Origin: Anthoceros angustus
Lineage: Eukaryota; Plantae; Anthocerotophyta
Direction of reading: 5' to 3'
Length of the DNA stretch: 64,000 bases
NCBI GenBank assembly: GCA_010909165.1
Contig: VJWM01000063.1
Coordinates: 1,736,001 to 1,800,000, forward strand
Below, in pieces: positions 10,561 through 46,205 of this stretch; the stretch's first letter is position 1, and each line of letters starts with the position of its first letter. Made by a program: the position numbers and the translations under genes. The notes below the pieces were generated by a model that saw only the letters and a list, made by a program, of their open reading frames with translations, searched no databases and had not been told where the DNA came from.

Positions 10561-10699
10561 CTTAGGCTTTCAAAGCGAGGGGGATCTGCAATGCATTAGT
10601 CTTTGAAAGAGAGGGGGGTCGGGTGGCGTATAAAGCACGTAGAATAGCCAGATTGTATGCGGGAACAGTAACCTAGCGCCCAAAGTCGTTGGCCACGTA

Positions 10700-11310: not shown

Positions 11311-11989
11311 GAATCGGGGGACGGGGCCCAGCGGGGATGGCCGTTGTGGAAGGCGGAGGAGGAGGCGGGGAGTGGCATGGATGATGGGAGGGCGGTGCAT
11401 GCGGTGTCGAGTGCGGCGAGGAAGGGTCTAGCAGGACCATTTTGTTTCTTGTTGCTATTTTTGCTTGCTATGCGATCGATTATGAGCTTGCCATGGTGTG
11501 CATTAGTGGCAATGGTAGTAATCTTGGCGGTGGCGGCCTTTTGTTGTGTGGGAGACGGTGACCCGGTGGCGTCATTATATGCAATTGGTGAAACCCCCAT
11601 AAAATGATTACGAAGTGATGTGTTAGGCGGTCCGATACGCTCCACTGCAGTGTCATGTGAAGGAAAGGGGTTGGCGGTTAAGGACACGAACACAAGGAGG
11701 GCCAAAAGGGTTGACAAATCGCTAGTGCATAAAATGTCATGGTTGCCATGCGGGTTAGTCGAGCGGGGTGACGACAATTAAGTTCATGACAGGCGAGTGG
11801 CGAGCCGCGCGACACAGCTGAGATGCCAATTGCGTCTTGGCATGCGAGAAAATTCGCGGTCCCGTCAGGCCCGTCGAGCACGCGTTATGGCCGAGGCGTC
11901 GCCACAGCGGAGGAGGCGGCCATCAAGGCCGGCGCAATTGGAAACAACGGGCGCAAAGGCGGTGGCGGGGCGGGGAGTAAAGGAGGTCG

Positions 11990-13130: not shown

Positions 13131-14838
13131 GAGGTGGGTGGCGGAGGAGCCCGGAGGAGAGGCGTGGGGAGGCGGTTGCCCTCCCCGCAGCGATGGCGGG
13201 GCGACGCCCGCTGCGCGGAGGAGAGGGAGGGAGCATTGCGCATTGGAGGAGGAAGGCAACCCCGCTTTGGGGACCAGGGTCGTTGAGGGCAGCGAGGAGG
13301 CGATTGCGCCCGCCCGGCCGAGAGGAGGGATGGAGGCATGCCTCACGGGCGCGCGCCCGGCGGAGGCCGAGCTTCGGGCATGGCGGTGGCGGTGCCATGT
13401 CGCCCGCCGCCGGAGGTCCATGGTGGCGGGGGCGATGCTGCCGCGAGGCCGACGGAGGCACAGCGATGGCGGGGATGGGCGGGATCACGGGCGTGGAGGC
13501 GACGCCGTCTTTGGGAGCAGACGAGCCAGCAGTGATCTTGTGGCGATCTCGGCAGTGGGGCCAGCGCCGTCCGGTTGAGAAAAGGCTGTATGGGAGGAAT
13601 AACGGTTCCATCGGTGGCGCCATCTCGGCGTGGAGGCGGAAGCGGATTAGCGGGCGAGGCGAGGCTGCGGAGGGAGGCGAGGCGGCTGGCTGCGCGCGAG
13701 CTCACCGCGGTGGAGGCCGACATCCGGCCCGTGGGGAGGAGGAGGAGGAGGAGGTGGAGCAACTCCGGTACGGTGGCGGGGCGGAGGCCATGTCGGAAGA
13801 AGATGGAGAGTGCGGCTCAACCCCACTCAGCGGAGCCAAGGGGAGGAAGCGCGACTACGAGGAGTCGGACACGGTGTCCGTGGAGCAGCGCGCCCGGCCA
13901 AGGCGGGTGCCTCAGGCGCCCAATGCCGGGCCGGCTGCTGGAGGCGGGGGCCAATAGGGACGGGAGGCGATGAGCAGCGGAATGCTCGGCCGTGGCCATG
14001 GAGGGGCACAATTAAGGTCCTTCGGCGGATGATCAAGCGCATGGAGGGGAAGTAGGCGGCGCGTCATCCCTTGTCTTGAGAGATGCATCGGCGGTTTTAG
14101 TTGTTTGCATAGGAAGCATGCGCCGTAGGAAAGGCCTTGATGGGAGATAGGGTTTGATGCTAGCTGTGCAATTTTGCGATGTGTGCAGTGGACATCCTTT
14201 TTTGATCAATGGAATGGCACCCCTTGGCTGTGAAATTTGGCTCTTTGCACGCAGCATAAACATTCTTGGCGAGGTTGATGGGTAGACGGCGGTGGTGGTG
14301 GGTCGCCATCCCCTCTTCCTGTTTGGAGCCGCATCGTGCTTCTTCTTGTTTGAAAGAGGATCGTGGCTCTCATTGTTTCCAGCATCGCGGGTTCCTTAAG
14401 GAATAGACGGTCCCAAAGTCCATACTGCGACGAGGAAGCGGTGGGCGCTGCATGGTTCGCAAACCATGGCCGTGGCGCGGCGCGGCCCGTCATTACTACG
14501 CATGCCGGCGGCGTCGTAGGGTTTGTGAATCAAATGGAGCGGTGCGCCGGCCACGTTAGGGTTTGGTGGCCATTGGATGCCCTCGAAGGAAACTTAATGG
14601 CACAAGGTAGTGCGGAAACATTCGAAAACATAGTGTCCCGTCTCTTTGTTTTCAAAGGTGAAAGCCGGAAATTTTCAAGGACACCCGTTTGAGGACATTG
14701 TGTGTGTCCCTTTGGTGTAGCCGCTCTTGGTTAGGGCGCCAAAGCCATGTGGCCATGTGGCAAAAAAGAAACCTGCTTTGGAATGTAGGGTATATTCCTC
14801 AAGATCCCCACGCCTTGCATGGGTTTCGCGAAAAAATA

Positions 14839-14875
14839 AATGTCCCATCCCCTCTGTCCCCTTTGGTATGCCATA
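14839..14875. repeat. Right terminal inverted repeat of copy A
   Basis: AATGTCCCATCCCCTCTGTCCCCTTTGGTATGCCATA, identical to 34611-34647. Confidence 0.9.
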
Positions 14876-15064
14876 ACCAAGTCAAGAGCTTCTAAATGTT
14901 GAACATAGTGGTACTGAGATTTACTAAATGTATCCAATTTTAGCATAGGGAAATCAGAACGATTGGTTTGTTTTGATTTACTTTTAAAATACCAAATTAA
15001 AAAAATATTAAGCAAGCAAGGGTTTATTTAAAAACCAAGGAACACCTGGGGCATTGGATCCGTG

Positions 15065-15099
15065 TATGGCATACCAAAGAGGACGGAGGGACATTTTTT
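15065..15099. repeat. Left terminal inverted repeat of copy B
   Basis: TATGGCATACCAAAGAGGACGGAGGGACATTTTTT; subterminal CCAAAG motifs recur near both ends. Confidence 0.9.
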
Positions 15100-16279
15100 C
15101 TTCCATAAAACTTTTGGTGTCGGTTTGGTAACCCGACCGAAATGGGGTAGCCAAAGGGGCACCAAAGCCACTTGGTCCGGATTTCAGAAAGGGAACTTTA
15201 GGGTTTTTGCGCACTCACTCTATGTGTTTTTCTCCCACGGAACAAAAATTTTGTTCCGCGCCATTCTGTTTAGGGTCCGGTAGGCCTCGCCGCAAGCCAC
15301 ATGCCCGTTTTAGGGTTCATGTGCTAAGAGGGTGGAGCGGCATGGTTTAGGGCAGTTTAGGGCAACCGATTTGGCGGGGCGCTGCGCCACGCCGAGGCAG
15401 TGGTTGGGGCGACGGCGAGGCGGCGAGCGGGGCGGGGCGGAGGCGGGGCGGGGCGGGGCGGCGAGGCGGCGGCGGGGCGTGTCGAGCGGCGGCGAGCACG
15501 CAGCGGCGCCTCAGGCGGCGGCGCGCCGCGGCGCCCTCATTGTGAGCGCGCGGCGAGCGGGCGGGGCGGGCCCGGCCACGCCCACCACGGGGCGTTGGCG
15601 GGGCGGCGGCGAGCGGCGGGTGGGGGTTCTGCGCGGACGAGGCGGAGAAGGCGGCTGCGTTGAGGCAAACACGGGGCGGAGGAGGGCTGCGGTGGCGGCG
15701 GGCAGGCGGGGCGGAGGCGGGGCGGGCGAGGGCGAGGCGGGGCGGGCTGCGGTGGCGGCGAGGGCAGACGAGGCGGCGGGCCTTCACTCAGGTGACAGAC
15801 GGCCAGCCGTGGAGGCGGGGCGGGGCGGGGCGGGGCGGGGCGGGGCGGGGCGGGGCGGGCAAGGCGGGGAGGCGGGGAGGCGGAGGAAGGCGGTGCAGGC
15901 GGCGGGGGCAGGCAGGCGGCGGGGCGGGCAGGAGGCGGGGCGTGGCGAGGCCTGCCCGGGCGCGCTGGGAGGAGGCAGCCGTATGATCCTCCCCATCCTT
16001 GCACCAAGCCGCAACTAACCTCCTCATTTCTTCACGCCCATGGTGATGCCGAATTGTTTGATGCTCATTTCTTTGCAAGCGGTGACGCAGATGGTACTGG
16101 TGCCACTGCAGTGTGTAGGCTTCTGCGGTTGTGGGCGGGATGGCCCGGCCCCTCTCCTCCTCACATGCATGAGGCCGCAGCCTGACCCTTGCATGTGTGG
16201 GGCGGTGGAGGAGGGTTCCACGATCTCCTCCGAGCTCACCCGATCCTAATATGTGGAGTGAGTTGTTTCTGTCTTATGA

Positions 16280-16711
16280 CCCCAAGAAGCCAATGCATCC
16301 TTTGTCCTCGAGGAGCTTGATGCGCTTTTGCGACATGCGGAGGACCTAGCGACCTCATCGCCACAGAGAACTACCCTTGGACTTGAAGTTCTTTTGGTGA
16401 GGGCGTGGTCGCGGTATTTGGACTGGACTTCCCTCTGCGAGTGCCTTCCGTGGCGCACTATTTCATGCATACCCATTTTGATGGGTGGCCATTGGGTCCT
16501 AACGATCCTGCGAGGCCTCGCGGTCCAAGCACCCGAGTCACCGGAGGACTTCAAGGCGTGGATGGCCAAGTTTCACTCACGGCTTGACTCCACGGTAGGT
16601 GGCCTCGGCCTTCTCGCCCCCTCCATTTCATCTCAACGTCTTCTGAATTGGGCCCGCCAACCATGTCTTGTGGGAGGAGATGAGCGACCTCTACATCATC
16701 GAGGGCGGTGA
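16280..16711 (+). pseudogene. Possible Ulp1/SENP-like cysteine protease fragment
   Basis: ISCIPILMGGHWVLTIL resembles the Ulp1 catalytic-His strand (IPIxxxxHWxLxV). No clear catalytic Cys motif was seen. Confidence 0.35.
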
Positions 16712-17304
16712 TCATGGGGTTGGGGCTGGTGGTCATGTGCTTTAGGCCGTGGCGAGGGTTTTGATAGGACTTGATGTCTGAGGCCTTTACGGTTTAGATT
16801 TGTAGGTGTCTTGAGACCACTTCCCAGTTTTGACTTGACCAAATTTTGGCCTTCCCTCTTTCGTATTCTCACCACTCGGCGGATATGCCCGTTTTCAACT
16901 TGGCCCTCGGTTCATGCTTGCCGCGTGTTCCCTCGTGCATTTTGGCCGCTTTTCCATTCTCCCTTGTCAGCCCCCCGGCTTTTGCCCCGACTTTCCATGT
17001 CACTTGCTTATTAATTGACAACCCATACAGGCCCTTCTGTGTGATTTGGGTCCATGGAACTCGCTCTTCCACGGAGGTTCGTCGCTTTGATAGCTGCCTC
17101 CACTTCAAGGAATGCGGTTTCACACAAAGGTGATTCGACGCGCGTCTCACAATTTTCATGCACCATTGTGGAAGGTCGGAGAACTTGCGAGAATGTCTGC
17201 CCATGCCTTGCGGTGGACATGGCCCGGTTCTTTGGGCCAGGAGGCTATTCCATGAGCCCTGCGTCATGTGTCCTGTGTGGCCCCTCCGGCCCTCACGTTT
17301 CTAT

Positions 17305-18012
17305 CCTATCGGCGGTGATGCCCTGTCCCGTCGCCTTCCCTATCCATGTCTCATTGTCTCCCGCTTGCACTACAGCCCGCCTAGTCCACCGGTGCCACCG
17401 CGCACCTCATATGAAAAGCGTTCGAAGAGGTTAAGGGCTCTCCATGTCCACAGTGTATGTGATGCATTCCACTCCACACCATCTCCTGCGGAGGGATCCC
17501 GTCGCACCTGTGCAAACAGCACACCGCTCTGCAGGCGATACATGTCCGGGGAGTAATTTGTACACTTCAAGCTCGTCGCCATGTCCCTCGCCACTTGCAT
17601 GTCCTACACAAAACATTTGTCGTCATCCTGTTGGTGTTCACATTGAGCGGTCTTGGTGGCGTTCACCCTATCGGCGGTGATGCCTGTCGCCTTCCCTATC
17701 CATGTCTCATTGCCTCCCGCACCACATACCCGCCCCGCCCCCTGCCACCCGCGACGCACCTCATATGAAAAGCGCTCAAGAGGTTAAGGGCTCTCCATGT
17801 CCACAGTGCACCGGTTCCGCATTCCACTCCCACACCATCTCGCAGAGGATCCCGTCGCCGCAATACAAGCACACGGTCACCGCCGCAAAGCGATACATGT
17901 CCGGGAGGTAATTTGTACACTTCAAGCCTGCCTCGTACGCCATGTCCCTCGCCACTTGCATGTCCTACACAAAACATTTGTCGTCATCAGCAACTGTTGG
18001 TGTTCACATTCA
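17305..18012. repeat. ~360-bp tandem duplication inside copy B
   Basis: CCTATCGGCGGTGATGCC...GGTGTTCACATT occurs at ~17305-17645 and again at ~17666-18012. Confidence 0.85.
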
Positions 18013-19300
18013 GGACGGTCTTCGGCTGACGTTCACTTACCCCTGTCAGCAATGCTATCGGAGGAAGCGGTGGCACCTCCGGTGCAACGTTGCGGGCGTA
18101 CTGTGGTCCGGGGACATAGTAGTCGTTGTCGTCCTCCTCGTCTACCCCATATGCAGGCGGCCCTACCAGGCCAGCCAGCCGCTCCTCCTCCTGGAAGGCC
18201 TCCGCGGGGACGTGGCCAGCTATGTCATCGTCTCCCGACCTCATTTTCCTCACCCTGTGCAAGTTCCACACCCGAACGAAAGTCGCCAGCTCTGTCCTCA
18301 TGGTGGGCATGAATGCTGCGTGCAAGGAATGTATGTGCCAAGGGTTCGTGGTATCCAACTCACGGCTGTCCTGCAGCTCCAACATGTACCTCTTGTACAG
18401 GAAGCCCCACTTCTCCTTCAGCGCCCTCCAGAAGTGCTCGATCCGCTGCCTCCCACCCACCAACCCACCAACCCGCCGTTATATATGCGGCTCCGGCCGG
18501 AAGTTCCGAGCCGCGTCGTGAAGCACATTGCGGCAAATCCCTTCACATGACATCCGGTATCCACCTTACGATTGTGCACGATGGCCCCGAATGAAGTTCC
18601 TCCGTTCTCTCGCGGCCTCGCTGGTTGAGTCCTCCTCAACTAGGTTGTGCTCCCGCGAATCGGACCGAATCCGCTGCGGGTGCCCAAACTCTCCGCACCG
18701 CCTCGCGTCGCCTTGTAGATTGTTCAGCCCGCTTGTTGTCCTCGGCACCGCCCCGCGTTATGTAGTCGTTGCCCCATCTATGGCCGCGTGCACCACGAAG
18801 TGGAACATGTACATCTTGTCGTCTGTGCCACACTTTTCGCACCCGTTAGCTTCATGCGTTGTCTTTGCGGCTTACTCGGCGACCACCATGTGCTCCAAGT
18901 TCCGCACACACGATCCATGTGCCACATGTACATCGGTGTTACATTGTGTATTGCACCGAATCTTGCTGCGACCTCATTTTCCATGGCCTCCGGTGCATGG
19001 CTCGCAATCTTTGCCGTCACACCCCTCAGGCACGGCGGCCCGGCCCCGCGTCTTGCTGCACAATCCTCACTCCCAGTTCACACCACGCGTGATGGTCACA
19101 TTTTGTAGGATGAGGTTGCGACGTCTTCTATTGTTCTCGGCGGACCGCGTGGCACCTCTCCATCCACGGGCACCGTGCGGCCACCTCCTCCGTCCGCGGT
19201 GCACATCCCGGCTCGCTGCGAGCCCTTTCAATGTCCGTCCGCCCCTCCTCCGCCCCTCTGCGATGTTCCTCAAAGTCTCCACTTGAAAGGCGGCCTGGCC
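17987..19300 (-). pseudogene. IS3EU/IS481-type DDE transposase (integrase core) with spliceosomal introns, frameshifted
   Basis: MWHMD|HDKMYMFHFVVHAAIDG, then EFGHPQRIRSD, VHN and RIEHFWRAL...WHIHSLHAAFMPTMRTELATFVRVWNLHRVR. This matches the family pattern WHIDGxHKL...VIHGxIDG, FGxPxRVRSD, SVHNQRIERxW, LHxxFxPxxxxxLxxFxxxWNxH. Introns: 18823-18911 (GT..CTAAC..CAG) and 18446-18569 (GTAAGG..CAG; phase off by 2). Confidence 0.75.
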
Positions 19301-20299
19301 GTTCCCTTCCCTCTCCCGCCTCGCCCTCTGTTTTTGTCGGAGGGCTCGTGATCGTCTCCACCTCCGACGCCGCTTTCCTCCCCTTCCTCCGCCGGATCCC
19401 CCTCCCGTCCTCTCGCCTCGGCCCCTCCATCTCCCCTTGCAGCCGCCCCATCTCCCCTCCGCCACCCCACATACGGTCGGCCTCACCGGACCCTCCGCCC
19501 CTCCGCCATCCTCTCATTGCCACAGCCGGCCCCTCCGCCTCTGCCTCGCACCCGCTCTGGGCCTCGGCCCGCCTCTCCCCTCCTCCGGTTCCCTTTGGCC
19601 CGCCCCTCCCCTTCCTCCCACCCCGCGCGCCCCGCGCCCGCCCACCCCGCCCGTCACTCGCACCGGATGGCGCTCACGGCCCCTCCGCCCCTTCCTCCTT
19701 CCGCTCGCGCCCTCGCCCGCGGCCCCTCGCCCGTCCCTCCCTCCGCCCCTCGCCTCTCCGCTCCCTCCGCCCCTCCTCCTCCTCCGCCTCGGCCCGCCCC
19801 TCCCCTTCCTCCCACCCCGCCCCAACCCCATCGTCCGACCCCCCCGTTCACGCCTGCCATCCACCCCGCGCCCTCGTCATCACCCTCATCTCCCCCTCCT
19901 TCCCCCTGCACACCGCCGTCTTCGCCCTCATCGCCGCGCCCCCTGCACTCCGCGCCATCAATCCGACCATCGCCCTGAAGCGAACCCAACCCCGCCCGTT
20001 CTCTGCCGGCGTCCCCCATGATCGCTGCAGGTGTTTCGCGTACTCGGGCCTATCCTCCCCACAGCCTGCCCTCGCCGTTGCGTGGTCTCCCGCTGGGATT
20101 CACTACTTGGAGCCGCGGTCGGGTTCAGCACCGGAGCACGCCACTTGTTCCATCTACTGACAATGCGTGGTTTCCCTCATCTCCGGCCGTATGTCGAATA
20201 ATTCCGCTTTCACGACCGCAATTGTTCATGAAATGAAGCGTCATGTGCCTTATTCACTTCTGACGCTTTGGGTTGCCGGATGATGCCTAAGGACATTCA

Positions 20300-21350
20300 T
20301 GCCTTGCTTCTTTCCACAAATCCACGATACAATGTTTCAAATACCCCCACCATTATTCCTCGCCTTTCCACCCCACAACTCTCGGTGATAGGCCACGGTG
20401 TGTGCGTTGAAGAGAAACACGAGACTCTTTGTACCCCCCTACACTGGAATTTGGGCTCCCATATCTCGCGTGCTCGAGGATGGCGTGAGCGTGCAAAGCC
20501 TCCTCTTGACAAAGAAGCTCACCTTGTCCACGACAAGACATCATCGGTTGTCAAGGAGAAAGCGGCAACCGACATTGCGACGGCGGCACCCCTCGTCGAC
20601 TCGCGGGCAATTGTCATTCGCCCATGCCGATCGCTGCATGCCATCGCCAACATGCCCATGTAGTCCCGCTGCCCGGTCCACACATCTATGCGGGAACGTC
20701 GTGGCGGTCCATACCGATGCACCAGTGTCGCATCCCCACTCCACCAAGCAGCCACCCATCGCCCTTTGCGGTCTCGCGCATGCTCCTTTTTATTTAGGAT
20801 GCATGGCGATCCAGTTCAGCGGGCATCGTGTCCACCACCGTCGCGCATGGTACGTGGGTCGCGATCGAACCCACCCACGTACACAGTCGACCATCGTCAC
20901 CAAGCACGGCGACATTGCATCCGCCTCACCCCACCACCATTGCTGCACTCTTACGAGCGGCCAACTCCATCGCCTTCGCATCCCTTCTCCTTCGTGTTGG
21001 ACCGCCCCAACCCACCAATCCGCCGTGGCGAGGCTCCTTGTTCTTCGCAGCCTCCGCAATTCAAATGTGTCCATGTGCTGAAATAGATACCCTCGGTGCA
21101 TGTCGCCCAACCTCCACAACTGCATTGCCCACCTCTCATCCGGAGCATCCTCCACTTGGCATGGTTCCATCCTGCACGCACCAAAACCACCCACGAGTCC
21201 AAGCCCGCAGCCCTTGTCTCCTCCGATCGCCCTCGACATCGCCACCATGTCCCGGTCCATCCGCTATGCGAGCGTGCGAATGTCGTCCGGCGTTACGCGA
21301 ACACCGGCATGGACGGCGATGATGTCGACGTCCTCTACCCGGTCGTCCGC
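20300..21350 (-). pseudogene. Possible second Ulp1-like protease remnant
   Basis: VRVTPDDIRTL (~21270), RHWCIGMD (~20715) and TESCGV (~20385) occur in Ulp1 order but in different frames. Confidence 0.25.
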
Positions 21351-21879
21351 TGCGCAACGCCCCCACGCCATCGTATCCTCGTGTCCCTGTTCGTTCCATC
21401 CGGATCCGCTACCGCCTGTGGCCCCGCAAAAACAACCGCGATCGAGCCACCGCCGCCTTCTTCGCTCCATGCTCAATGATGTTTCCCCCATTCCCCCTTA
21501 GCCTTTGCCGCGACCCCAACCCCAATTTCACTTCGCTCTCACTCCCGCACACTGCACGGACCGCGATTGAAGTTCCCAATGTCCCTTCACCCCACGGGGT
21601 TTCGTCGACTTCCGTTATCGCCCTCGGCGTCGTCGGAAGCGGTGGTCTGCTCGATGACCCGCCATGGCTCCACGATTTCCACAACTCGACCGTCGGAGAA
21701 TGGAGTGTCCTCCAGCGGCGCATGGACTCTTCCTTCCGCTTGAAATTGAATAAGGCGGCATCGCGATTTTCGGAGGCACCGCGGGCTGTCATTGCTCCTC
21801 CCGCCACACTTTTAAGATTCCACGCGCCGCCACGTTGTCCTTCTCGACCGCGGGTGCATTAATTCGCCTCCTTTTGTGT

Positions 21880-23050
21880 GCACAAGCTACCTCCTTCGCC
21901 CCACATACTCACTGGCGAACACCAGAATGAACACGCAACTTGCGGCATCAATAATTACCAATGGGATGGCATTTGAAACATGTAGTCCACAATCCCAAGC
22001 GAACATCACACATCACACAACGACTTGGCCACCTCTCTACAACGGCTCGGCAATCTCGCTAGGCCATGCCATAAACCGTGTTGTGAGAAATGGCGGTCGC
22101 ACCCTCGCGCACATAGTGTCCTCGAGTCATACAATGGAAGGAGCAATGTCGGCGCACGTCATGGCTGGGGGAGCTGTCCTCCGTCATCAATGGTACTTCA
22201 AACACCACAATTGGCCCCTCACCAAAGAACACGCGGTCCGTAATGAAGGTGCACTTACTCTCTGCAAAGACAACCTCGCCATCGCGAACATGGTCTTATT
22301 TCGGTGCATGCCTCAAAGGTCGTCCGTTCGGAAGTTATCTCACATCCTTGAGCAGGAGAAAAAGCGACCACCTCCAAAGATAACGTGTTCACAATGGGCA
22401 TCACCGCCCGAAGGCCCAAGCTGCACCACAAGTCGAACCCGTCCCCACAAGCCCCCAACATGCAAGCACTTTTAAACAAGACCTCCTCGGTTAGCCTCTC
22501 GACCATGCTCACCTCCATGCCAAGTGCGGTCCCGGACGGCGTGCAAAATGTCGAAAAACTCCGGATCCCCAGCCGTGATGAGGGCAACGGCCTCCTTGAT
22601 GGCCGCATGCGCCGTCCGCACTTGCCCATGAGGCCTTCTTCATAGACAACACACCCATCACCTCCGGGTAGCACGCTTTCATGTCCGCCTTGAAGGCCTT
22701 CCTCAAGAACGATGAGCCCCGGCGCATCTTGCCACACCTTCCGTCCATCCGGCCGCCAAGGGCGTGTGCAATTGTGGCCCGTCATGGGGCATGACACTTG
22801 CACGCCGGCCGCCAGACCATGTACACGAGGTAGCCAAAGAACCGAGCATGAGTCGAGGCTGCGTGTTAGAATGAAAGGCCGGGCTATGATGAACACTCCA
22901 CACACACGCGACTCACCACACAATCGCTCATCCGCGAGATGGACTTCCCCTTTTTGATGTGGTGCAGTGTCCCCGAGCCCCCGGGGTTGTCCCTCGCCTC
23001 AAACACGCAGTTCATGAACATGGGATTACGCGGTGCCGCCATGCTCGCCG
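21880..23050 (-). pseudogene. Crypton/DUF3504-like tyrosine recombinase remnant (copy B)
   Basis: KGKSISRMSDC|ASTHARFFGYLVYM is in frame across intron 22859-22916 (GTGAGT..CTAAC..CAG). It is followed by FKADMKACYPEVMGVLSM, GDPEFFDILH, RLTEEVLFKSACMLG, LGLRAV/EHV and HSGVRQ. Confidence 0.6.
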
Positions 23051-24299
23051 ATGCGGTGGCCTAAATCAACCGTCTCCGCCTCTGGCAAACTACCCCCCCC
23101 ATGCCGGGTTGCGTACTGGACATGGAACCGTGGGAACACAGACTTCCCATCACAATGTTGCTTGAAGAGGTCTCGAGGCCCGCATTCGGCCGCCTCTACA
23201 TCACCCGCAAAGCGATCGGGAAAGTGGCCATGGCGGGCGCGTATGCTGGGCACTTCAATTGCTGAATGGCAATAGGCGCAGGAGGTCCTACCTTCAGCAC
23301 AATCCGCCTCTTACACGATGCTGCTGTCTGGATGGGCTCCAGTGGTATTTGTGAGGCGAACCGGCGCATAGCGGAGTTGGCGGCATCGTGGGCCTCTTGC
23401 GCCACTTCCGTAAACCGCCCGGCGTCTCCCTCACAAATCGTTACGCCTCGCCGCGGCGACGCCTTCCATTCTCGGTGGCGCCGTGCGGCGCGACTCCTCC
23501 TCATCAGCAGTGGCGGAGGTTGGTTGTGGCCCATGTCTCCAAGTCCTCGCTCTATGGCCCCGAGATCGAGGGCCGGGTCTACGCCTTCCAGCTTCAAGAG
23601 CCTCGCCGCGGCGCGATCGCCGATGAAGCCTTCTTGTCACGACATCGTAAAGCTCCAACCCCGGACGCCACCACCGCCGCAGCAACCCTCCGTGTCTATC
23701 CGATGTCCTTCTCCATAATCGAGTGCACGGTCAACACCCGGCGTGGTCCGGATTCCCCATCCTGCACTCTCTCTCGCGCGCCTCGCCGCGGGATGTCGAA
23801 AACATCTTGGCCTCACGCGCTCGCGCATTCCGTTTCGCGCATGGGAGATGGCTGGCAGCTTTCTTCGCAGCCTCCAGGAGGACGGAAGCAGACTGCCATG
23901 CCGCAACCAGCCGCTCGTATGTTTTCAAGAATCGACGCCCGGCGGCGGCTGCGATCGCGTTCACCGCCGCCATGCCTCGCCGCCTCCCCATCTCGCCAGC
24001 CGGAGGGCGCCCTCCTTTCATCTGCGGAATCGTCAATGACCACGAAGGCCCCACTGCGATTGCCCCCGGTCGAGGCGATGGCACAAAGCCACTTGGTCAA
24101 GTCGGATCTCGGTCCGGCCGGAGATCGAGTCTGTCGTCCACCACTTGTGTGCACGTCATCTCCGTCGAAATCCGCTTCCCGCCGCCGCTCCTTCCTCCTC
24201 TTCCAAGACCCACTTTTTCGGTAGTTGCGGACCATGAGCAGCGTCATCGGGATCGGGATCCCGGACATACAAAGCGCACCTTGCAAAACGTTAGCGCCT

Positions 24300-25150
24300 G
24301 TGATGCGGTGCTAAGGCGAAACGAGGCGGGTCATCTGTGAGGCTGCGATCGGCGAAGCTGCGGGCTTGCACCTGCCAGTTCGCTGAAGCAACCAGGCCCA
24401 AATTCTTGCGGGAAGGCGGAAGAGGGCTGCCACCTGGTCCACGAGTGCGGCCGCCAGAGTCCCCGGATCAAACTCGGAACCGTCATACCTCGCTCCCACG
24501 GGCATGGCAGCCGGTACGTGCAACTCCACCACTGTGCAATCTGCTGCAGCAATCCTCTTGACAAACCGCCTCCCCCCATCTGCCTCTGGTCCTAAGTGGA
24601 TGGCCTCGTAAATGCGATTCTGCGGAACCGTGATAGCGAGCTTCTTCATGTGCACTCGGCCCTGCGCTGCCAGACGCCCGCCCTCTCTGCCGTCTCCCCC
24701 CCCCAGGAACCATAATCGGGTGATTGCGGCGTTGTGTGAGGGGGATGTTTCCCATAGCCGCACGCACCGTTGCAGGTTCCGGCGCCGTGGAGGGAACGTG
24801 CACCCCCACCCTCACTGTCCCCGGAAGGTACCTGCTCCGGTCGCTGCGCCCAGACTGCGACGCCGAGCCTGCAATGGACACTTCTGGCCAAGGGTCCGCC
24901 GCACCAGTGGCCGCTGGTGTCTGGCAAACACCGGAGGGGCCTTGCGGATTGCCTCGCGCACTGTGAATTCTAGCAGGCGTGCAGGAGGCTTGCAAACGCG
25001 ATGAGGCCGACCTTGGCAGTGGGGGATTTGACTGGAAGACATTTGCATCCTCGTCGTCGGAGTTCACCCAATCTCCGAGAATGTCGTCACCGCCATCGTG
25101 CACAGCATTCAGACGGCGACGGCGCTCCGGCCTCTCCTCGTTCGCCATGT
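24300..25150 (-). pseudogene. Unknown element-borne ORF remnant (copy B)
   Basis: HMKKLAITVPQNRIYEAIHLG...RRFVKRIAAADCTVVELHVPAAMPVG, homologous to 7050-7900. Confidence 0.35.
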
Positions 25151-25869
25151 TTTCACTTGGATTGGTGCACAGTCCACCAAAAAAAAGATGGGTGTGCCTT
25201 GGTCACGGCCGCGCGATTTCCGGTCAAGGGTGGAGATGGCGGGGGCGGCGTGTCCGCGATGGCGACCAGCCGCGCCCCGATCTGCAGGAAGATACGGGCG
25301 CCGTCTCCCGTCTTCACTTCTGCGCGACAAGAGCGGAGGTTCATTATTTCGTGAGTCGTGCCCCAAACGCCTCAAACCCCGCTTAGGATTAACAAAAATG
25401 CCCGCCTTTCGATGTACGGAAACACGACATTCATTACATCGGAAAGACGGAGATGGGCGCCGCGTTCCGCCGTCTCCGGCATGCACCTCGTCGGATGGCG
25501 CATTGTTTAAGGCGGATGGTGGAGATGAGGACATCTTTGCTGCGCCCTTCTAGAAGACGCGTTGTTTATGTTTGAAGTATTCGTGCGGAGGGACCGGGCA
25601 GAGGCCGTGGACAAGAATGCGGCGCGACGCTTGGGAAGACGCGGTCGCATCTTCAGCAGACAGGGCCATGCTGCATGCCGGTGGCGGTCGTGAGCAGTTG
25701 GCGGCCTCGTCTACAAAACATCGTGCGCTCACGGAAGGGGATTCCGACATGACCAAGGACGGCCGTGTTCGCTCGTAGCAATTTGCGGTTTTGTCAAATC
25801 ACTTCCTCCATACATTCACCCAAGCATATATAGTGAATTTGTCCTGCATTTCGAACGAATGGATGGCGG

Positions 25870-27600
25870 AATAACGGATGGATATTGAGTATGAGGTTTT
25901 TGTTCACACATGGCTAGTAGGAGGGTTTTGGGCCAAACTATAAGGCCCAAAAAGGATGGAACATAATGCATAATGTTTTCAATTTTCAAAGGCCAAGGAA
26001 GATAGTGGTACATATAGTACAGAGGACTTGACAACCTTGGCCTTTGGGATATTTGAAAGGAGGAAACATCATGCATGGTGTGTCCATGCCAAAGGCCAAG
26101 GAAGGCGAGAGGCATATACTACAAAGGACATGTCATCCTTGGCATTTGGGATTTGTCACAAACGAAACATCATGCATGTTGTTTCAACCACCAAAGGCCA
26201 AGGAAGTTAGTGCTACATATACGGTAGGCTTGGTCTTCCCATATGTGTGTGTCAATAGTTGGATGGCAGTAGATGTAAAGGTAAAACATCTTTAGGGTTT
26301 AGCGAAGGGACGTTGGCGTGTTAGAGCATGTGCACATATGCATGTAATCCCATATATAGACATAAATATTACATATGTCTTGTTCCTTGGACTTTGGCCT
26401 ATAGTAGGATTGATAGGACATGCTAGCATCCTTGAAAGGTTGGTATATAATATATGGATATATATGTAGGAGAAAGTTGAAAAATAAGCATGCTGCTGCA
26501 CAGGATGTGCTCAGGTTTTTTCTTCCTCTATCCCTTGCAGAAAGGAAATTTTCCATGCATCGTCGATAAAGTTTCTTGGCATATGCCTAAGGATCTTTGT
26601 GCAGGTAGCAATGAAAAAGCTTCTTATTTTTTGTTTCCCTTTTCTATGTATCGCGAAAGGGTTTTCCTTTATATGCATCAATGAAAAGGGTCCTTGCACT
26701 TTGGTACAAGTGACTGATAATGTCTTCGCCTTGGAAAAGAGGTATATTATGTTCTCTATATGCGGGAAAAACCGTATACCGCATGATATGTGAGAAGTTG
26801 TGCTCTCTAGTTTTGCCTTCTTCTATCCTTCGTCGATGGCAAGTTTCCATGCATCATGAACAAAGTTCCTTGGGGCATGGGGAATGAACTTTGTCCATGA
26901 TGCATGCGAAATCGATATTGTTTTTGCCCTTTTCTTCTGGTTTTTTCGCTTGACTTCGGGAAAATGGTCCTTGGCCTTTGGTAGAAGTGAATGGTAATGT
27001 CTTCATCTTAGAACTAAGGTATATTATGTATGTCTATATATGCAAGAATAACACCGTTAACGTGCATGATAGGATAGAAGTTGTGTTGTGGGTTTTCCTT
27101 TTGTGCTTTCGCTTTTTCCATGCATCCGACGAGTTCCTTGGCCTATGGCGAAGGCTTTCAGTGCATTGAAAGTTCCTTTCCATATGTTACCTTTTGTATG
27201 CTTCGTGCATCTTTCCCGACATGTGGGAAAAGGCTCCTTGGCCTTTGGCACATGTGACTATGAATGTATTCGCCGTTGAACCGAGGTATATCATGTATGT
27301 CTCTATATGTGCAGAATAACAACGTAAACCTACATGACATGGGCGAAGTTTTGTTTTGGTTTTGTCCCCTTGTAATCTTCGCCTGTGGCAATTCTTTGAA
27401 TGCATCCTCCAAAAAGCTGTTTGGCCCATGGGGATTGATTTTTTCCCACGATGCGACGGAAATTTTCCTTATGTTTTTTCCCGGTCTGTATGCTTGGCCT
27501 ATGTGTATGCTTGGCCAATGGAATTGTCTCTACATGCATCATCGAAAAGGGTCCTTCGCCTATGGTACAAGACATTGTTCATGACCGGTCTTTGAAACTA
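25870..27600. repeat. Internal repeat array of copy B (inverted units ~25970-26210, direct units ~26520-27600)
   Basis: CCAAAGGCCAAGGAA repeats followed by TTCCTTGGCC(T/C) repeats, homologous to 9100-10560. Confidence 0.75.
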
Positions 27601-27719
27601 GTTATAGCATACAGCTATATATGTAGGAATAACGTGGAAAACAAACATGGTGCTTGCGGTTGGTATACGATTTTCCCTCCGCATCGTGTAAATCATTGGC
27701 CACATGGCGGATGACGTTT

Positions 27720-28350
27720 TGGATGATGCATGCCATTACGTTGTCCTCCATGACGCACTTGTTGTTCTCAAGGTTGTGGAGTCCGAGGCACAAACGCCAA
27801 GGCAGCGGCAAACTCCGTCGCGCGATCCACAACGGCGGGTGAACGCGTTGGAAGCCGCCCGAACTTGCCGTGATGGGCGGAACGAACTGGCCATACCGGG
27901 GAAAGAGCGGCGAGGAAGAATGGCGGGGCGCGAGACAATGCGGCGGGGCGGTAGTGCATAGAACGGGTTTGGCCGCTGCCATCCCGTGTTGTAAGGGCGA
28001 TTGGTGTGGAGGTGATTATGCGTGCGTGGACACCTCCCGGCCTCTACACGGTGTAGGGTGCGGAACAGCGGTGGATGAACACGCCGGAAGTGTGATGGAT
28101 GGGAGGAAGGAGCCGAGTGGTGCGCGTGCTCGGCGATGGCACCGGACGGTGGGCAATCGCTTTTTCCGCAGCGCACATCCTTGGAATGGGCGAGGAGTTT
28201 GCATGTGGCTAGTGGAAACGCCGAGGAGGTGGTGCGGAAGGTCAAGGAGGACTTACAGTGCAGCTTAACGATCACAACACACGAGCGAGAAAGGCGGTTG
28301 TCGTGCAGTGCCGTCTTGCCGAGGAGGTGAAGCTCCGGTGGGACAAAGGG
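27720..28350 (+). pseudogene. RPA70-like OB-fold remnant (copy B, unit 1)
   Basis: LAVMGGTNWPYRGKS (cf. DBD-B VxAxKGxxVxxFxGKS), DYACVD...GCG..V (zinc ribbon), VVRVLGDGTG..F..AHILGM (cf. DBD-C DxTG...FxxxAxxILG) and QLNDHNTRARKAVVV. Confidence 0.55.
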
Positions 28351-29549
28351 AAAAGGAATCGGGGAGGACGGCCCAAGCGGGATGGCCGTTGTGGAAGGGA
28401 AGGCGGAGGAGGAGGCGGGAGTGGCATGGATGATGGGAGGACGTTTCGGTGAGGAGGTGCGGAGGAAGGGGTCTAGCAGACCATTTTGTTTTCTTGCTTT
28501 TTTGCTTGCTATGCGATCACATTATGACCTTGCCATCTTTGCATTAGTGGCAATGGTAGTAGTAGTGGCGGTGGCGCTTGTGGACCGAGACGGTGACCCA
28601 CTATTATATTGGTGGTAGAAACCCCGAAAATGATTCTAAATAGTGATGTGTTAGGCGGTCCAAGATACGCCCATCGCGAGTGTCATGTGAAGAGGAAAGG
28701 GGTTGGCGGTTAAGGACACGAACACAAGGAGGGCCAAAAGGGTTGACAAATCGCTAGTGCACCTAAATGTCATGGTTGCCATGCGGTTAGTCGGCGGGTG
28801 GACGACACCGAGTTCATGATGAGTGGCGAGCGCGCACGAACCGATGCTTGCATGCGAGAAAATTGTCCCGTAAGGCGGCCGCGCCGCGGCAATGGCAACG
28901 GACGCCGCCACGGTGAGCGCCATCCCGCAAGGCCGCGCGGTGGAAAACAACGGCGCAAAAAGGCGCGGTGGCGGGCGGGGAGTAAAGCGAGTCGGCGAAG
29001 GAACTGCTTTCAGTGCATTGAAAGTTCCTTTCCATATGTTACCTTTTGTATGCTTCGTGCATCTTTCCCGACATGTGGGAAAAGGCTCCTTGGCCTTTGG
29101 CACATGTGACTATGAATGTATTCGTTGAACCGAGGTATATCATGTATGTCTCTATATGTGCAGAATAACAACGTAAACCCGCATGACATGGGCGAAGTTT
29201 TGTTTTGGTTTTGTCCTTGTAATCTTCGCTGTGGCAATTCTTTGAATGCATCCTCCAAAAGTTGGCCCATGGGGATTGATTTTCCCACGATGCGCCGGAA
29301 ATTTTCCTTATGTTTTTTCAGTGCTATGGCCTATGTGTATGCTTGGCCAATGGAATTGTCTCTACATGCATCATCGAAAAGGGTCCTTCGCCTATGGTAC
29401 AAGACATTGTTCATGACCTGGTCTTTGAAACTAGTTATAGCATACATATATATGTAGGAATAACGTGGAAAACAAACATGGTGCTTGGGTTGGTATACGA
29501 TTTTCCCTCCGCATCGTGGTAAATCATTGGCCACATGGCGGATGACGTT

Positions 29550-30200
29550 TTGGATGATGCATGCCATTACGTTGTCCTCGCATGACGCACTTGTTCTCAA
29601 GGTTGTGGAGTCCGAGGCACAAACGCCAAGGAACGGCACAAACTCGTCCCCGCCGCGATCCACAACGGTGCGTTTGGGAAGCGCCCGAACTTGCCGTGAT
29701 GGGCGGAACGAATCGGCCATACCGGGGAAAGAGCAGAAGCGACCGAGGAAGAAGAATGGCGGGGCGCGAGACAATGGAAGCGGACGACCGGGTGCATAGA
29801 ACGGTTGGTGGCGGCTGCCATCCCGGTGTTGTAAGGCGATTGGTGTGGAGGTGATTATGCGTGCGTGGACACCTCCCGCCTTCTACACGGGTGTAGGGTG
29901 CGGAACCATGGATGACGAACACGCCGGAAGTGTGAAGGATGGGGAGGGAAGGAGCCGAGGTGTGGTGCGCGTGCTCGGGCTGATGGCGACGACAATGGGC
30001 AATCGCTTTTCACCGCGCACATCCTTGGAATGGAGGCGAGGAGTTTGCCGCTGGTGGCTAGTGGAAACGCCGAGGAGGTGGTGCGGAAGGTCAAGGAGGA
30101 CTTACAGTGCAGCTTAACGATCACAACACACGAGCGAGAAGGCGGTTGTCGTGCAGTGCCGTCTTGCCGAGGAGGTGAAGCTCCGGTGGGACAAAGGGAA
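29550..30200 (+). pseudogene. RPA70-like OB-fold remnant (copy B, unit 2)
   Basis: Duplicate of 27720-28350. Confidence 0.5.
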
Positions 30201-30719
30201 AGGAATCGGGGAGGACGGCCCAAGCGGGATGGCCGTTGTGGAAGGGAAGGCGGAGGAGGAGGCGGGAGTGGCATGGATGATGGGAGGACGTTTCGGTGAG
30301 GAGGTGCGGAGGAAGGGGTCTAGCAGACCATTTTGTTTTCTTGCTTTTTTGCTTGCTATGCGATCACATTATGACCTTGCCATCTTTGCATTAGTGGCAA
30401 TGGTAGTAGTAGTGGCGGTGGCGCTTGTGGACCGAGACGGTGACCCACTATTATATGCAATTGGTAGAAACCCCGAAAATGATTCTAAATAGTGATGTGT
30501 TAGGCGGTCCAAGATACGCCCATCGCGAGTGTCATGTGAAGAGGAAAGGGGTTGGCGGTTAAGGACACGAACACAAGGAGGGCCAAAAGGGTTGACAAAT
30601 CGCTAGTGCACCTAAATGTCATGGTTGCCATGCGGTTAGTCGGCGGGGTGGACGACAATTGAGTTCATGATGAGTGGCGAGCGCGCACGAACCGATGCTT
30701 GCATGCGAGAAAATTGTCC

Positions 30720-32150
30720 CGTAAGGCGGCCTCCCGGCGATGGCGGCGGGGCGCCTCCCCATGGCCATGGCGGCGGGGCGCCTCCCCATGGAGGCGGCAG
30801 GCGCGGTGGAAACAACGGCGCAAAAAGGCGCGGTGGCGGGCGGGGAGTAAAGCGAGTCGGCGAAGGAGGCGGGGAGTGATGGAGAAGGAGACAAGCGCGG
30901 CGGGAAGCGGGCGGCGGGAGGGGAGGAGGCGGACGGCGGCATGGTGCCGCTGGGAGGAGGAGACACTCTTCCTTGGCGGGGCGGCGAGGCGGGGCGGAGG
31001 AGGAGGCGGGGAGGGCAGCCTCCCCATGGCCATGGCGGCGCGGCGAGGCGGCGGGCGGGGAGGCGGAGGCGGGCGGGGCGCCTCCCCATGGAGAAGGAGG
31101 CGGGCGGGCAGGGCTCCCGGCGATGGTGGCGGCGGCGCGGGGCCCAGCGGCGGCGCGGGGAGGGCATGCCTCCCCATGTCCGAGACGGGAGGCGGGGGGA
31201 GCGCCCCGCCTCGGAGGAAAGGGGGCAGCCTCCCGGCGATGGAGGCTGCGGCAGCGGGTGCCCGGCACAGAGCAGGCGGGGAGGGCACTGCCTCCCCATG
31301 GAGAAGGCGGGCGGGGCGGCAGGCGCCTCCCGGCGATGGGCGGCGGCAGTGCAGGGGCCCAGGCGTGGCGCGGGCGGGGAGGGCATGCCTCCCCATGGAG
31401 CATGGAGGCGGGCGGGGAGGCGAGCCGCCTCCGCCTCGAAAGGGGCCGTGGCCTCCCCGATGGAGGCCGCAGCAGCGGGGTGCCCAGCGGGCGCAGCGGG
31501 GAGGGGAGCCGCCTCCCCATGGAGAAGGAGTCGGGGCGGCAGGAGGCGCCTCCCAACGATGGAGGCGGCAGTGCGGGAGGGCACTGCCTCCCCATGGCGG
31601 AGGCGGGGAGGCAGGCGCCCGCCTCCAAGGCAGGGGGCAGGTGGCCTCGCGATGGCGGCAGGCGCGGGGCGGCGGCGGCGGGAGGCGGGCGGGGGAGCCT
31701 GCCTCCCCATGGAGAAGGCGGGCGGGAGGCGGGGCGCCTCCCCATGGAGGCGGCAGCAGTGGGGCCCAGGCGGGGCGCAGCGGGGAGGGCACATGCCTCC
31801 CCATGTCCATGGCGACGGGAGGCGGGGGAGAGTCGCCCGCCTCGGAGGAAAGGGGGTGCCTCCCAGCGATGGAGGCGCAGCGGGTGCCCGGCGGCGCGGC
31901 GGGAGGCACGCCTCCCCATGGAGAAGGAGTGGGAGGCGCAGGCGCCTCCCGGATGGCGGGGGCCAGCGGGCGCGGGGAGGCTCGCCTCCCCATGGCCATG
32001 GAGGCGGGGGGCGTGGAGGGCAGAGCCGCCTCCGCCTCGAGGAAAGGGGCGGCTGGCCTCCCCTCGGCGATGGGCGGCGGTGGCGCGGGAACCCCAGCGG
32101 CGGGCGGGGGGCGCGCCTCCCCATGGTGATGGACGTGGAGGTGGGCTGGA
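30720..32150. repeat. GC-rich hairpin minisatellite (copy B)
   Basis: More than 15 CCTCCCCATG motifs, many preceded by GGGGAGG. Confidence 0.85.
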
Positions 32151-32374
32151 GCGGAGGAGCCAGCGGTGGAGGAGACGTGGGGGAGGGCAGGTTGCCCTCC
32201 CCCACGGCGATGGCGGGGGCAGATGCTGCCACTGCGCAGCGGCAGAGGGAGAGGGAGCGGGAGCATTGCGCATTGGAGGAGGAAGGCAACCCCGCCTTTG
32301 GGGACGACGGGGTCGTTGAGGACGGCGAAGGAGGGGCGATTGCCGCCGAGGCCGAGGCCGAGGGGGGAGGAGGG

Positions 32375-33760
32375 GATGGAGGCAGGCTGCCTCACGCGGC
32401 CGGGCCCGAGCCGGAGGCCGAGCTCGGGCATGGCGGTGGCAGTGCCATGTCCGCCGCCGCCATGCCCGACCCCGAGGTCGGCCATGGTGGCGGGAGGGCG
32501 ATGACTGCCGCCGCCGAGGCCGACGGAGGCTGGCGATGGCGGGATCGAGGCGGGAGGGAGGCGGGAGGGCGAGTCGCCCGCCTCCCCATGGAGGCGGAGG
32601 CGAGCCGCGCGCCGGGCGGCGATCTCAGGAGTGGGGCCAGGCGCCATCCGGTTGAGGAAGGCGTATGGGAGGAATAACCCGTTCCATCGGTGGCGCCATC
32701 TCGGCGTGGGCAGCAGCAGATTAGGCGGAGGCTCGGCGGTGCGGAGGAGGCGGAGGCTGCTGCTGCGCGAGCTCACGGCGGTGGAGGAGATCCGGCGGCA
32801 CCCGTGAGGAGGAGGAGGAGGAGGAGGAGGGGTGGGAGCAACCGGTGTGTGGCGGGGCGGAGGCCATGTCGGAAGAAGATGGAGAGCGGAGTGCGGCTCA
32901 ACCCCAACTCGGAGGGCGAGCACAAGGGGAGGAAGCGCGACTCGTCGGACACGGTCCGGCGGAAGCGCCGCGGCGGTGCCTCGACGCCCAATGCCCGGAC
33001 GCTACCGCCGGAGGCGGACGCGCCACCGATGAGAGCGATGAACGGGAATGCTCGGCCGCCGAGGCCATGGAGGCAGCCTCACGCCGGGCCCGAGCCGGAG
33101 GCCGAGCTCGCATGGCGGTGGCGGCACGTCCGCCGCCATGCCCGACCCCGAGGTCGGCCATGGTGGCGGGAGGGCGATGATCGCCGCCGAGACCGAGGCC
33201 GACGGAGGCCGCGGGCGATGGCGGGATCGAGGGCGGGATGCGGAAGGCGTGGAGGGGCGACGCCGCGGCCGGAGCGGACGAGCCGCCGGCCGGGCGGCGA
33301 TCTCGGGGGAGGAGGAGCGGAGGCTGCTGAGGAAGGCGTATGGGAGGAATAACCGCCATCGGTGGCGCCATCTCGACGTGGAACGGAAGCAGCAGATTAG
33401 GCGGAGGCGGGGCGGAGGCCATGGAGGCGGAGGCGGAGGCGGAGGCGCGCGCGAGCTCACGGGCATGGAGGAGATCCGGCGGCATGTGAGGAGGAGGAGG
33501 AGGAGGAGGAGGAGGGGTGGAGCAACCTGTGACGGTGGCGGAGCGGAGGCCATGTCGGAAGAAGATGGAGAGCGGAGCCCAACCCCAACTCCGCGGAGGG
33601 CGAGCACAAGGGGAGGAAGCGCGACTACGAGGAGCTCGACACCTGTCCGGCGGAAGCGCCGCGGCCAAGGTGCCCGACGCCCAATGCCCGGACGCTACCG
33701 CCGGAGGCGGACGCGCCACCGATGAGAGCGATGAATCATGGAATGCCGACGCCGAGGCCA
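32375..33760. repeat. ~695-bp tandem duplication of a GC-rich module that is single copy in A (~13330-14000)
   Basis: ATGGAGGCAG..CCTCACGC..GGGCCCGAGCCGGAGGCCGAGCTC at ~32375 and ~33068. Confidence 0.8.
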
Positions 33761-34610
33761 TGGAGGGCACAATTAAGGTTCTCCGCAGATGATGAAGCGC
33801 ATGGAGGACGAGGGAAGTAGGCGTCGTCATCCATTGTGCTCGAGTTGCATCACCAATATTAGGTTTTTGCATAGGGGGCCCAAGCATGCGCCTTAGGAAG
33901 GCCGCGGTAGGAGATAGGGTTGGATGCTAGCTGTGCAATTTTGCGATGTGAGCAGTGGACATCCTTTTGTGATCAATGCAATGGCAGCCCTTCGCTGTGA
34001 AATTTGGCTCTTTGCACGCAGCATGAACATTCTTGGCGAGGTTGTTGGGTACAGGGCGGAGGTGGTGGGTCGCCATCCCTCTTCTGCTTCGAGCATCGTG
34101 CTTCTTCTTGTTTGAAAGAGGATCGTGGCTCTCATTGTTTCCGATCGTGGGTTCCTTAAGGAATACACGGTCCCAAAGTCCATAGTGCGAAGGCGAGGAA
34201 CGGCCGTGGGCTGTGCATGGTTCGCAAACCATGGCCGTGCCGCGTGCCGTCATTACTGCGATACCCATGCCGGTAGTGTGTAGGGTTTGACAATCAATGG
34301 AGCGGCCGCGGCACGTTAGGGTTTGGTGGCCATTGGATTCCCTCGAAGAAAACTTAATGGCACAAGGTAGTGCGGAAACATTCGAAAACATAGTGTCCCG
34401 TCTCTTTGTTTTCAAAGGTGAAAGCACTGAAAATTTTTCAAGGACACCCGTTTCGAGGACATTGTGTGTGTCCCCTTTGGTGCTTGGCCGCTCTTGGTTA
34501 GGGCGCCAAAGCGGCCATGTGGCCATGTGCTGTGAAAAAAGAAACCGTACTGGAATGTACGGTATATTCCTCAAGATCCCCACGCCTTGCATGGGTTTCG
34601 CGAAAAAAAA

Positions 34611-34647
34611 AATGTCCCATCCCCTCTGTCCCCTTTGGTATGCCATA
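34611..34647. repeat. Right terminal inverted repeat of copy B
   Basis: Ends CTTTGGTATGCCATA; non-element sequence begins immediately after. Confidence 0.9.
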
Positions 34648-35138
34648 GATCCGAACGAAGTGATTCTCAGTTTCGGACTCAGGAACCCGCTCAGACGAAG
34701 CGTAGTCTACCGCAAAGCGGAGGTAGCCTAGCCGGTGCCGCCGGTGACAGGCAGCTCATGCACGTCGTCTGCGAGGTTCCAGAGGCCGGAGATTTGGAGC
34801 GAGCTGCCGTACTACTCGCTGGGCGCGGTGAAGAAGACGGTGAGGTCCTCCTGAAAGGTCTCGCTGCCCGGGGTGTTGGAGTTGGAGACGTACATCCCCT
34901 GCGCGAAGCCCAGGCGAGGGCTGTCCATATGATGACGCACCCGGTGAGAGGATAATCGAAAAACGGTGCCCTTGCCGAACTGCGAGGCTCTGTTGCCGCC
35001 CTCGAGTACCGATCCGAACACCGGCGTGGAGTCCGTGAAGTGCATCCAGAATCCCACCACGTATTTGGTGGCCGCTGCCTCGCTCGCCCAGAGCAGAAGC
35101 AGCAGCACAGCCAGGCTTAGCCACTCCAGCCCCGCCAT
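34648..35138 (-). pseudogene. Dirigent-family protein, disrupted
   Basis: Signal peptide MAGLEWLSLAVLLLLLWASEAAA, then VVGFWMH, SQFGKGTVFDYPLT, LGFAQGMYV, YGSSLQISG, ELPVTGGTG and LRFAVDYA. It has in-frame TAG codons and indels, and its 3' end abuts the TIR of copy B. Confidence 0.8.
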
Positions 35139-35743
35139 CGCTGCAGACGCGCCAATCTGAACTTGTTGCCTTCGGGGCCTATGAGGTACAGAGACGCATA
35201 CCCACGGTGTATTATGAGGCGACAAAACATCACACTTTCTCCAGAGGAATTTCTAGAACAGAATTGGGTTCCAGGCAAGATGATGTCAGAAAAAGCCTCT
35301 CAGGTCGCCAAGGAACTGACTCGGGACCCGCATTTTGCTTGCCTGGCAACTACAAAATCCTCGCTCAGGAACTCCAAACCTCTACGGTCTTCCGGGCTAC
35401 TTGAATGACTCCTACCGAAGATTGGTTCTAAGACTAGGCTCACACAACTAATAGGGGGACTTGCCAAGTGCACAATATGTAACAAGGGAATATATACGTC
35501 ACTTCACTTTAAATGCTGGTCAGTTATTGGTGTGGCCTTCCCCCAGGCTGACTGTTTCAACCCCTTATGGAGGTTAGGAGCACAGCAAGTTTCTGATTAA
35601 TGATCCAAACTATCTGTAGAAAGCTCAGAGATGACAGTACTGACTAGACGTCCTAGTGCACGAAAGCTATCCTGAGGTTTCAAATTGATGCTTAGTGTAG
35701 CTCTGCCCCCCTAGGACTCCTGAGCAGATGCATAACAAGGAAG

Positions 35744-46133: not shown

Positions 46134-46205
46134 GCCTCTATAGCTCAGTGGTAGAGCGTCAGTCTTGTAAACTGAAGGTCTTGAGTTCGATCCTCAGTGG
46201 AGGCA
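46134..46205 (+). tRNA. tRNA-Thr(UGU)
   Basis: GCCTCTA/TGGAGGC acceptor stem, TCAGT-CT-TGT-AA-ACTGA anticodon arm and GTTCGA T-loop; 72 nt, no intron. Confidence 0.95.

Follow-up and report, generated by a model that had tools for sequence, protein, structure and literature searches.

A long, decayed DNA transposon of probable IS3EU/GingerRoot affinity and its diverged neighbor in Anthoceros angustus

A 64,000-nucleotide stretch of Anthoceros angustus DNA (assembly GCA_010909165.1, contig VJWM01000063.1, forward-strand positions 1,736,001 to 1,800,000; hereafter the window, whose own numbering is used throughout) contains at 15065–34647 a 19,583-bp element that we consider a probable member of the IS3EU/GingerRoot superfamily of DNA transposons, present as one old and inactive insertion, with an extra length made up mostly of repeats and with no recognizable cargo. 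A sequence-only reading of the same DNA had described a complete multi-gene transposon in which an IS3EU-like DDE transposase was combined with a Crypton-like tyrosine recombinase and an RPA70-like gene. The first part of that description, an IS3EU-type DNA transposon bounded by terminal inverted repeats (TIRs), is upheld by the TATGG..CCATA termini of the element, by a transposase pseudogene matching the Pfam family rva_4, and by a relative of this transposase that resides in a textbook IS3EU element. The multi-recombinase part is not supported. What the window adds to a known superfamily is a new member that is decayed and unusually long.

The matching TIRs that had been reported for the element are readily confirmed. 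The left arm, TATGGCATACCAAAGAGGACGGAGGG, occupies 15065–15090 on the plus strand, and the right arm, whose reverse complement is TATGGCATACCAAAGGGGACAGAGGG, occupies 34622–34647 on the minus strand; when the two arms are read directly against each other, 24 of 26 nt are complementary (92%). Allowing one 6-nt indel, the similarity extends to ~45 nt through GGGACATTTTTT, reaching ~15110 on the left, and then ends. The core of the repeat, TATGGCATACCAAAG, is present exactly three times in the 64-kb window (15065–15079 on the plus strand, 34633–34647 and 14861–14875 on the minus strand) against a chance expectation of 0.04. The third of these occurrences belongs to a second family member, copy A, which lies immediately upstream and is described below. 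The terminal bases are TATGG at 15065 and CCATA at 34647, and the right end of copy A is identical. When the entire window was scanned for TAYGG...CCRTA pairs in which 15 or more of 20 terminal bases match, the 15065/34647 pair was the only one returned.

Between these ends lies an IS3EU/GingerRoot-type DDE transposase pseudogene at 18122–18993 on the minus strand, which was recognized through a profile match, a three-frame reading, tblastn, and tblastx. The rva_4 profile, which describes an integrase core, matches the stop-free piece 17990–18478 (minus strand) with an E value of 2e-10, and tblastn of relatives lands on 18847–17927 of the same strand. With the relatives aligned to the three-frame reading, the first catalytic D falls in MYMWHMD (codon 18915–18913), the second in QRIRSDSREHN (codon 18661–18659) after the block FHFVVHAAIDG, and the catalytic E in QRIEHFWR (codon 18439–18437). 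The profile match and the aligned D, D, and E motifs together vindicate the earlier call of a DDE transposase inside the element. The remnant is broken at four places. The frame changes between 18913 and 18817, on the way from the first D to the next block; an in-frame stop (18760–18758) interrupts the conserved IDG motif; and two more stops fall between the second D and the E, in a stretch of ~35 additional codons that is possibly a former intron. Because the transposase is broken by stops and a frame change, the complete copy is unable to move alone; mobilization in trans is the most that could be expected of it. As the gene survives only as a broken fragment, its class is read from the profile, the motifs, and the relatives.

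Those relatives are distant. A phmmer search against 1.84 billion representative proteins gave 133 matches, the best of which is only 40% identical, and the transposase core is ~25–40% identical to database proteins overall. Ten of the ten matches that were profiled are rva_4 proteins, some of them with an N-terminal helix-turn-helix domain. The named relatives come from a moss (Ceratodon purpureus), a liverwort (Calypogeia fissa), a limpet (Patella caerulea), and fungi (Mycena, Tilletia, and Phenoliferia), and this host spread matches the known range of IS3EU and GingerRoot. IS3EU elements have TA..TA termini and usually 6-bp target-site duplications (TSDs), and they form one lineage with GingerRoot (PMC10045372), which is known from Selaginella lepidophylla, other lycophytes, and bryophytes (Cerbin et al. 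2019, PMC6839031; PMC10045372). The sequence-only reading had IS3EU known mainly from animals and fungi and did not recognize the combination from land plants; its premise of novelty does not survive these reports. Literature searches for rva_4 (PF24764), and for IS3EU together with a tyrosine recombinase, gave no relevant result.

The link to IS3EU is made concrete by one of the fungal relatives. Protein P0034 of Tilletia (GCA_001645005.2) sits in a 4,514-bp element (L006:5680–10193) that begins and ends with TATGG..CCATA, has perfect 46-nt TIRs, TATGGAACGCC.../...GGCGTTCCATA, and is flanked by a perfect 6-bp TSD, CGATAC. Rust-fungus IS3EU families have TAYGG..CCRTA termini (PMC12730594), and the Tilletia element carries this published signature. 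It also bears an oppositely oriented 362-amino-acid gene without a Pfam domain, and the identical insertion is found in two further Tilletia assemblies (L007 and L008). Around the other relatives, the contigs were mostly too short or lacked a TIR pair in the 10 kb to each side, leaving Tilletia as the only informative case. In Calypogeia fissa, a 950-bp palindromic unit resembling a miniature inverted-repeat transposable element (L010:17720–18669) has TATGGG..CCCATA ends and the flanks CACGTT / CACGAG; an rva_4 gene is found ~6 kb away, and the unit is possibly a nonautonomous IS3EU/GingerRoot derivative in this liverwort.

A self-comparison of the window identified the second, diverged family member. 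Copy A (4984–14875, plus strand) is collinear with 22058–34647 at 74–82% identity, has the same orientation as the complete copy, and ends in the same TIR at 14850–14875. The match halts exactly at the common terminus, and the flanking DNA past it is not duplicated; the second copy therefore has the same terminus in an unrelated flank, and the two copies are probably independent insertions rather than products of a segmental duplication. The spacer between copy A and the complete element is only 189 bp (14876–15064), and two independent insertions so close together would suggest local hopping or a preferred target region. The left end of copy A is outside the window. The sequence that precedes 4984 bears no relation to the first 7 kb of the complete copy, and no transposase remnant was detected there or in copy A.

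The flanks of the complete copy give a less tidy picture. GATCCG is indeed present on both sides, as had been noted earlier, and the right copy of this putative TSD (34648–34653) abuts the terminus. The left copy (15057–15062) is not flush, with TG (15063–15064) between it and the terminus, so that the 6 bp truly abutting the element read TCCGTG at its left end and GATCCG at its right end. The bases immediately beyond the three termini of the window vary (TG, TC, and GT), and because they differ the TG is no part of the conserved end. The flanks fit either a duplication of 6 bp plus a junction scar of 2 bp or one of 8 bp in which two positions differ, GATCCGTG / GATCCGAA. By our estimate, chance would place matching 6-mers this near to both ends in ~1 in 1000 cases, and for this reason we take the flank duplication as real. 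Because of the 2-bp offset on the left, a single copy does not allow a clean reading of the TSD length.

Conceivably, 15065 and 34647 are the left and right ends of different family members that came together through rearrangement, deletion, or nesting among clustered copies. Family members do cluster here, with three termini within 20 kb, and the left TSD is out of register. Furthermore, copy A is collinear with the complete copy only from 22058 rightward, and so the left 7 kb with its transposase is tied to the right 12.5 kb by the TIR/TSD pairing alone. We nevertheless consider such a composite quite improbable, since the two ends are correctly oriented and alike at 24 of 26 nt, no further internal termini were found, and GATCCG within 2 bp of both ends would be the ~1 in 1000 coincidence estimated above.

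Repeat blocks together make up ~40% of the element. From the left end, repeat analysis identified GC-rich simple and short tandem repeats of the GGCGG type at 15400–16000, a tandem repeat with a 353-bp unit (17330–18036; 1.9 copies, 82% matches) that abuts the 3′ side of the transposase remnant, and a GC-rich low-complexity block of the CCTCCGCCCC type at 19400–20000. The segment 22058–24773 is collinear with copy A 4984–7584 at 66% identity overall and 74–75% in the best blocks; it has no frame-specific conservation relative to copy A and no Pfam match. An AT-richer core with ~44% GC and short tandem repeats follows at 25800–27150 and is partly common to copy A (9294–9449). Next comes a 1.85-kb tandem duplication (27154–30867) made of 27154–29002 and 29006–30867, which are 91.8% identical; it is confined to the complete copy, the corresponding sequence being single in copy A. 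A GC-rich (~70%) minisatellite block of ~3 kb then occupies 30729–33770, with a further internal duplication (32384–33073 / 33071–33766), and the right subterminal region (33900–34621) is 80–97% identical to that of copy A.

The minisatellite is built of diverged 60–130 bp units, each with the invariant 12-nt core GCCTCCCCATGG. There are 16 such cores in the complete copy and 10 in copy A, and all 26 are on the plus strand against 0.83 expected. This sequence lies at 30753–32591 and 12206–13119, respectively, and the units that surround the cores are ~20% different between copies. Each core is preceded by its complement, GGGGAGGC, an arrangement with hairpin potential. Both copies contain the AT-rich core and the minisatellite, which are therefore parts of the family itself and did not arrive later by nested insertion.

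Whether the interior also holds decayed genes was addressed with Pfam scans of stop-free pieces. The set for these scans comprised 20 hand-picked pieces, 108 pieces of high and 89 of lower complexity that were all at least 55 amino acids long, and 56 pieces of 36–54 amino acids; 22 pieces whose entropy did not exceed 3.3, together with the filtered low-complexity short pieces, were set aside. Across 253 pieces of the complete copy and 84 of copy A, with a reporting threshold of E ≤ 0.1, rva_4 was the only domain to be found. Neither tyrosine-recombinase profile (Phage_integrase or DUF3504) matched a piece of either copy, and the Crypton-like recombinase of the sequence-only reading is unsupported. 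The same is true of its RPA70-like gene, with no Rep_fac-A_C or DUF223 match in the pieces of either copy and none in the PDB for the pieces tested there, and of its Peptidase_C48 cargo, which likewise drew no Pfam match from either copy.

The possibility that the element is a giant multi-gene IS3EU transposon, whose DDE transposase was once accompanied by a C48 protease, an RPA70-like gene, and a tyrosine recombinase of Crypton type, all of them now decayed, draws on its unusual length and on ~10 kb of nonrepetitive interior that is unexplained. Two strings, the likeliest prompts for the sequence-only reading, are also superficially suggestive: CxxC..CxxC at ~22019 (minus strand) recalls the RPA70 zinc ribbon, and GGHWVL at 16487 (plus strand) recalls the His box of ULP1. 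Moreover, multi-gene IS3EU elements with accessory TET/JBP and alpha-kinase genes are known in fungi (PMC12730594), a precedent that speaks for the idea and at the same time against its novelty. Neither string, however, has Pfam or PDB support. The piece containing GGHWVL (16280–16708, plus strand) had no Pfam match even at E ≤ 1 and no protease match in the PDB, the Cys string is not kept in the homologous stretch of copy A, and nothing relevant came back when the five pieces that looked most promising were searched with phmmer against every chain in the PDB. Patterns for a zinc ribbon, an HWxL box, and RHR..Y matched only strings at chance level. In a tblastx comparison of copy A with the complete copy, all six frames are equally conserved with no coding signature in any region, and because of this equality the divergence between the copies looks neutral. 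In addition, the moss, liverwort, Tilletia, and metagenome loci that bear relatives of the transposase have only the transposase core in common with the element by tblastx. Taken with the Pfam result, these observations make a giant multi-gene element very improbable. A DDE element equipped with a tyrosine recombinase and a single-stranded-DNA-binding protein would be remarkable if true, but the evidence for it is absent, and the case is a caution, since domains assigned by eye to decayed, GC-rich sequence could not be reproduced with profiles.

Other superfamilies with integrase-like or 8-bp-TSD behavior include hAT (8-bp TSD), Ginger1/2, and Polinton/Maverick (6-bp TSD). The termini of hAT elements begin with CAG or TAG, and hAT elements have a dimerization domain; Polintons carry genes for pPolB, a packaging ATPase, a protease, and a capsid. 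The flanks can be read as an imperfect 8-bp TSD, and Ginger and Polinton likewise have an integrase-like transposase, yet almost no credence can be given to an assignment outside IS3EU/GingerRoot when the Pfam scans returned none of these domains and no rve at threshold, when the TATGG..CCATA termini are those of IS3EU (PMC12730594) and neither hAT-like nor AG..CT, and when GingerRoot itself occasionally has a 7–8-bp TSD (PMC6839031).

If the element followed the mechanism of its family, the integrase-like DDE transposase would have bound the TATGG-initiated TIRs, excised the element, and joined it into a staggered cut of ~6 bp, the repair of which would leave the short TSD. Much of the present 19.6 kb is probably secondary growth in the form of the two 1.85-kb duplicates, the ~3-kb GC-rich palindromic minisatellite, and the smaller repeat blocks, whereas the backbone is common to this copy and copy A. 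Several points weigh against an IS3EU/GingerRoot insertion of this kind. The window holds a single complete copy, and its left GATCCG is 2 bp off the terminus. The TIRs measure 26–45 nt and the element 19.6 kb, compared with TIRs of 100–150 nt in Selaginella and sizes of 3.9–12.9 kb for reported GingerRoot elements (PMC6839031). The absence of cargo was read from single stop-free pieces of at least 36 amino acids, and very decayed, intron-split remnants could escape such a scan. A more speculative extension, which we regard as rather unlikely, is that the intact family constitutes a distinct giant (~15–20 kb) IS3EU/GingerRoot branch in a plant lineage outside bryophytes and lycophytes, with accessory genes too decayed or too novel to recognize and with a functional role for the AT-rich core and the GCCTCCCCATGG minisatellite, for example in protein binding or hairpin formation. 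As it stands, the window adds one long, dead IS3EU/GingerRoot copy with a neighbor and little beyond annotation.

The surroundings of the two copies contain Pfam matches to Myb, Copine, longin, and long interspersed nuclear element (LINE) reverse-transcriptase domains, a set with a plant-like look. Closest to the complete element is an open reading frame (ORF) of 137 amino acids at 34812–35225 (minus strand), which has an N-terminus resembling a signal peptide and terminates 165 bp short of the element's right end; possibly the transposon lies within or next to the 3′ end of a host gene. A dirigent-like identity for the ORF was considered and rejected, as it has no Pfam match. Further to the right, a tRNA gene (46134–46205, plus strand; 70.9 bits), the one Rfam match, is adjoined by a ~540-bp tandem repeat (46839–47903, 92.6% identity). 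A LINE-like retroelement remnant with overlapping ORFs (51279–53248, plus strand; RVT_1 E value of 1e-7) has tandem repeats nearby (52579–53843). Two intronless, phytolongin-like genes with a longin/synaptobrevin domain lie in inverted orientation at 56550–57473 (plus strand) and 59099–59995 (minus strand); they share ~72% DNA identity over ~400 bp, and their nearest database relatives are 37–50% identical.

In terms of known systems, Cryptons and the RPA70-like genes borne by Helitrons show no demonstrable likeness to the element, given that neither copy yielded a tyrosine-recombinase/DUF3504 or Rep_fac-A_C/DUF223 match. The likeness to the IS3EU superfamily of Repbase is considerably closer. 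The five terminal bases are identical (TATGG..CCATA), the TIRs are tens of nucleotides long (26–45 nt, similar to the >30 nt of fungal IS3EU elements), the D, D, and E of the transposase sit in an integrase core of the rva_4 type, and the flanks show a short, GC-containing repeat whose 6 nt would fit the expected TSD. IS3EU elements may also be large and carry extra genes. Unlike the fungal elements with their TET/JBP and alpha-kinase genes, the window element has no recognizable accessory gene; it is furthermore decayed, ~4 times as long as the Tilletia element, and offset by 2 bp from its TSD at one end. GingerRoot, which we compared by its published description, offers the land-plant members of the same transposase lineage. 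It has TA..TA termini, 6-bp and rarely 7–8-bp TSDs, and a preference for GC-rich targets (PMC6839031), and a moss and a liverwort are among the relatives of the window transposase. Its elements are many kilobases long, often with nontransposase DNA and often without a transposase. Through these comparisons, the TATGG..CCATA terminal signature emerges as one that is common to a plant-like host and to basidiomycete fungi.

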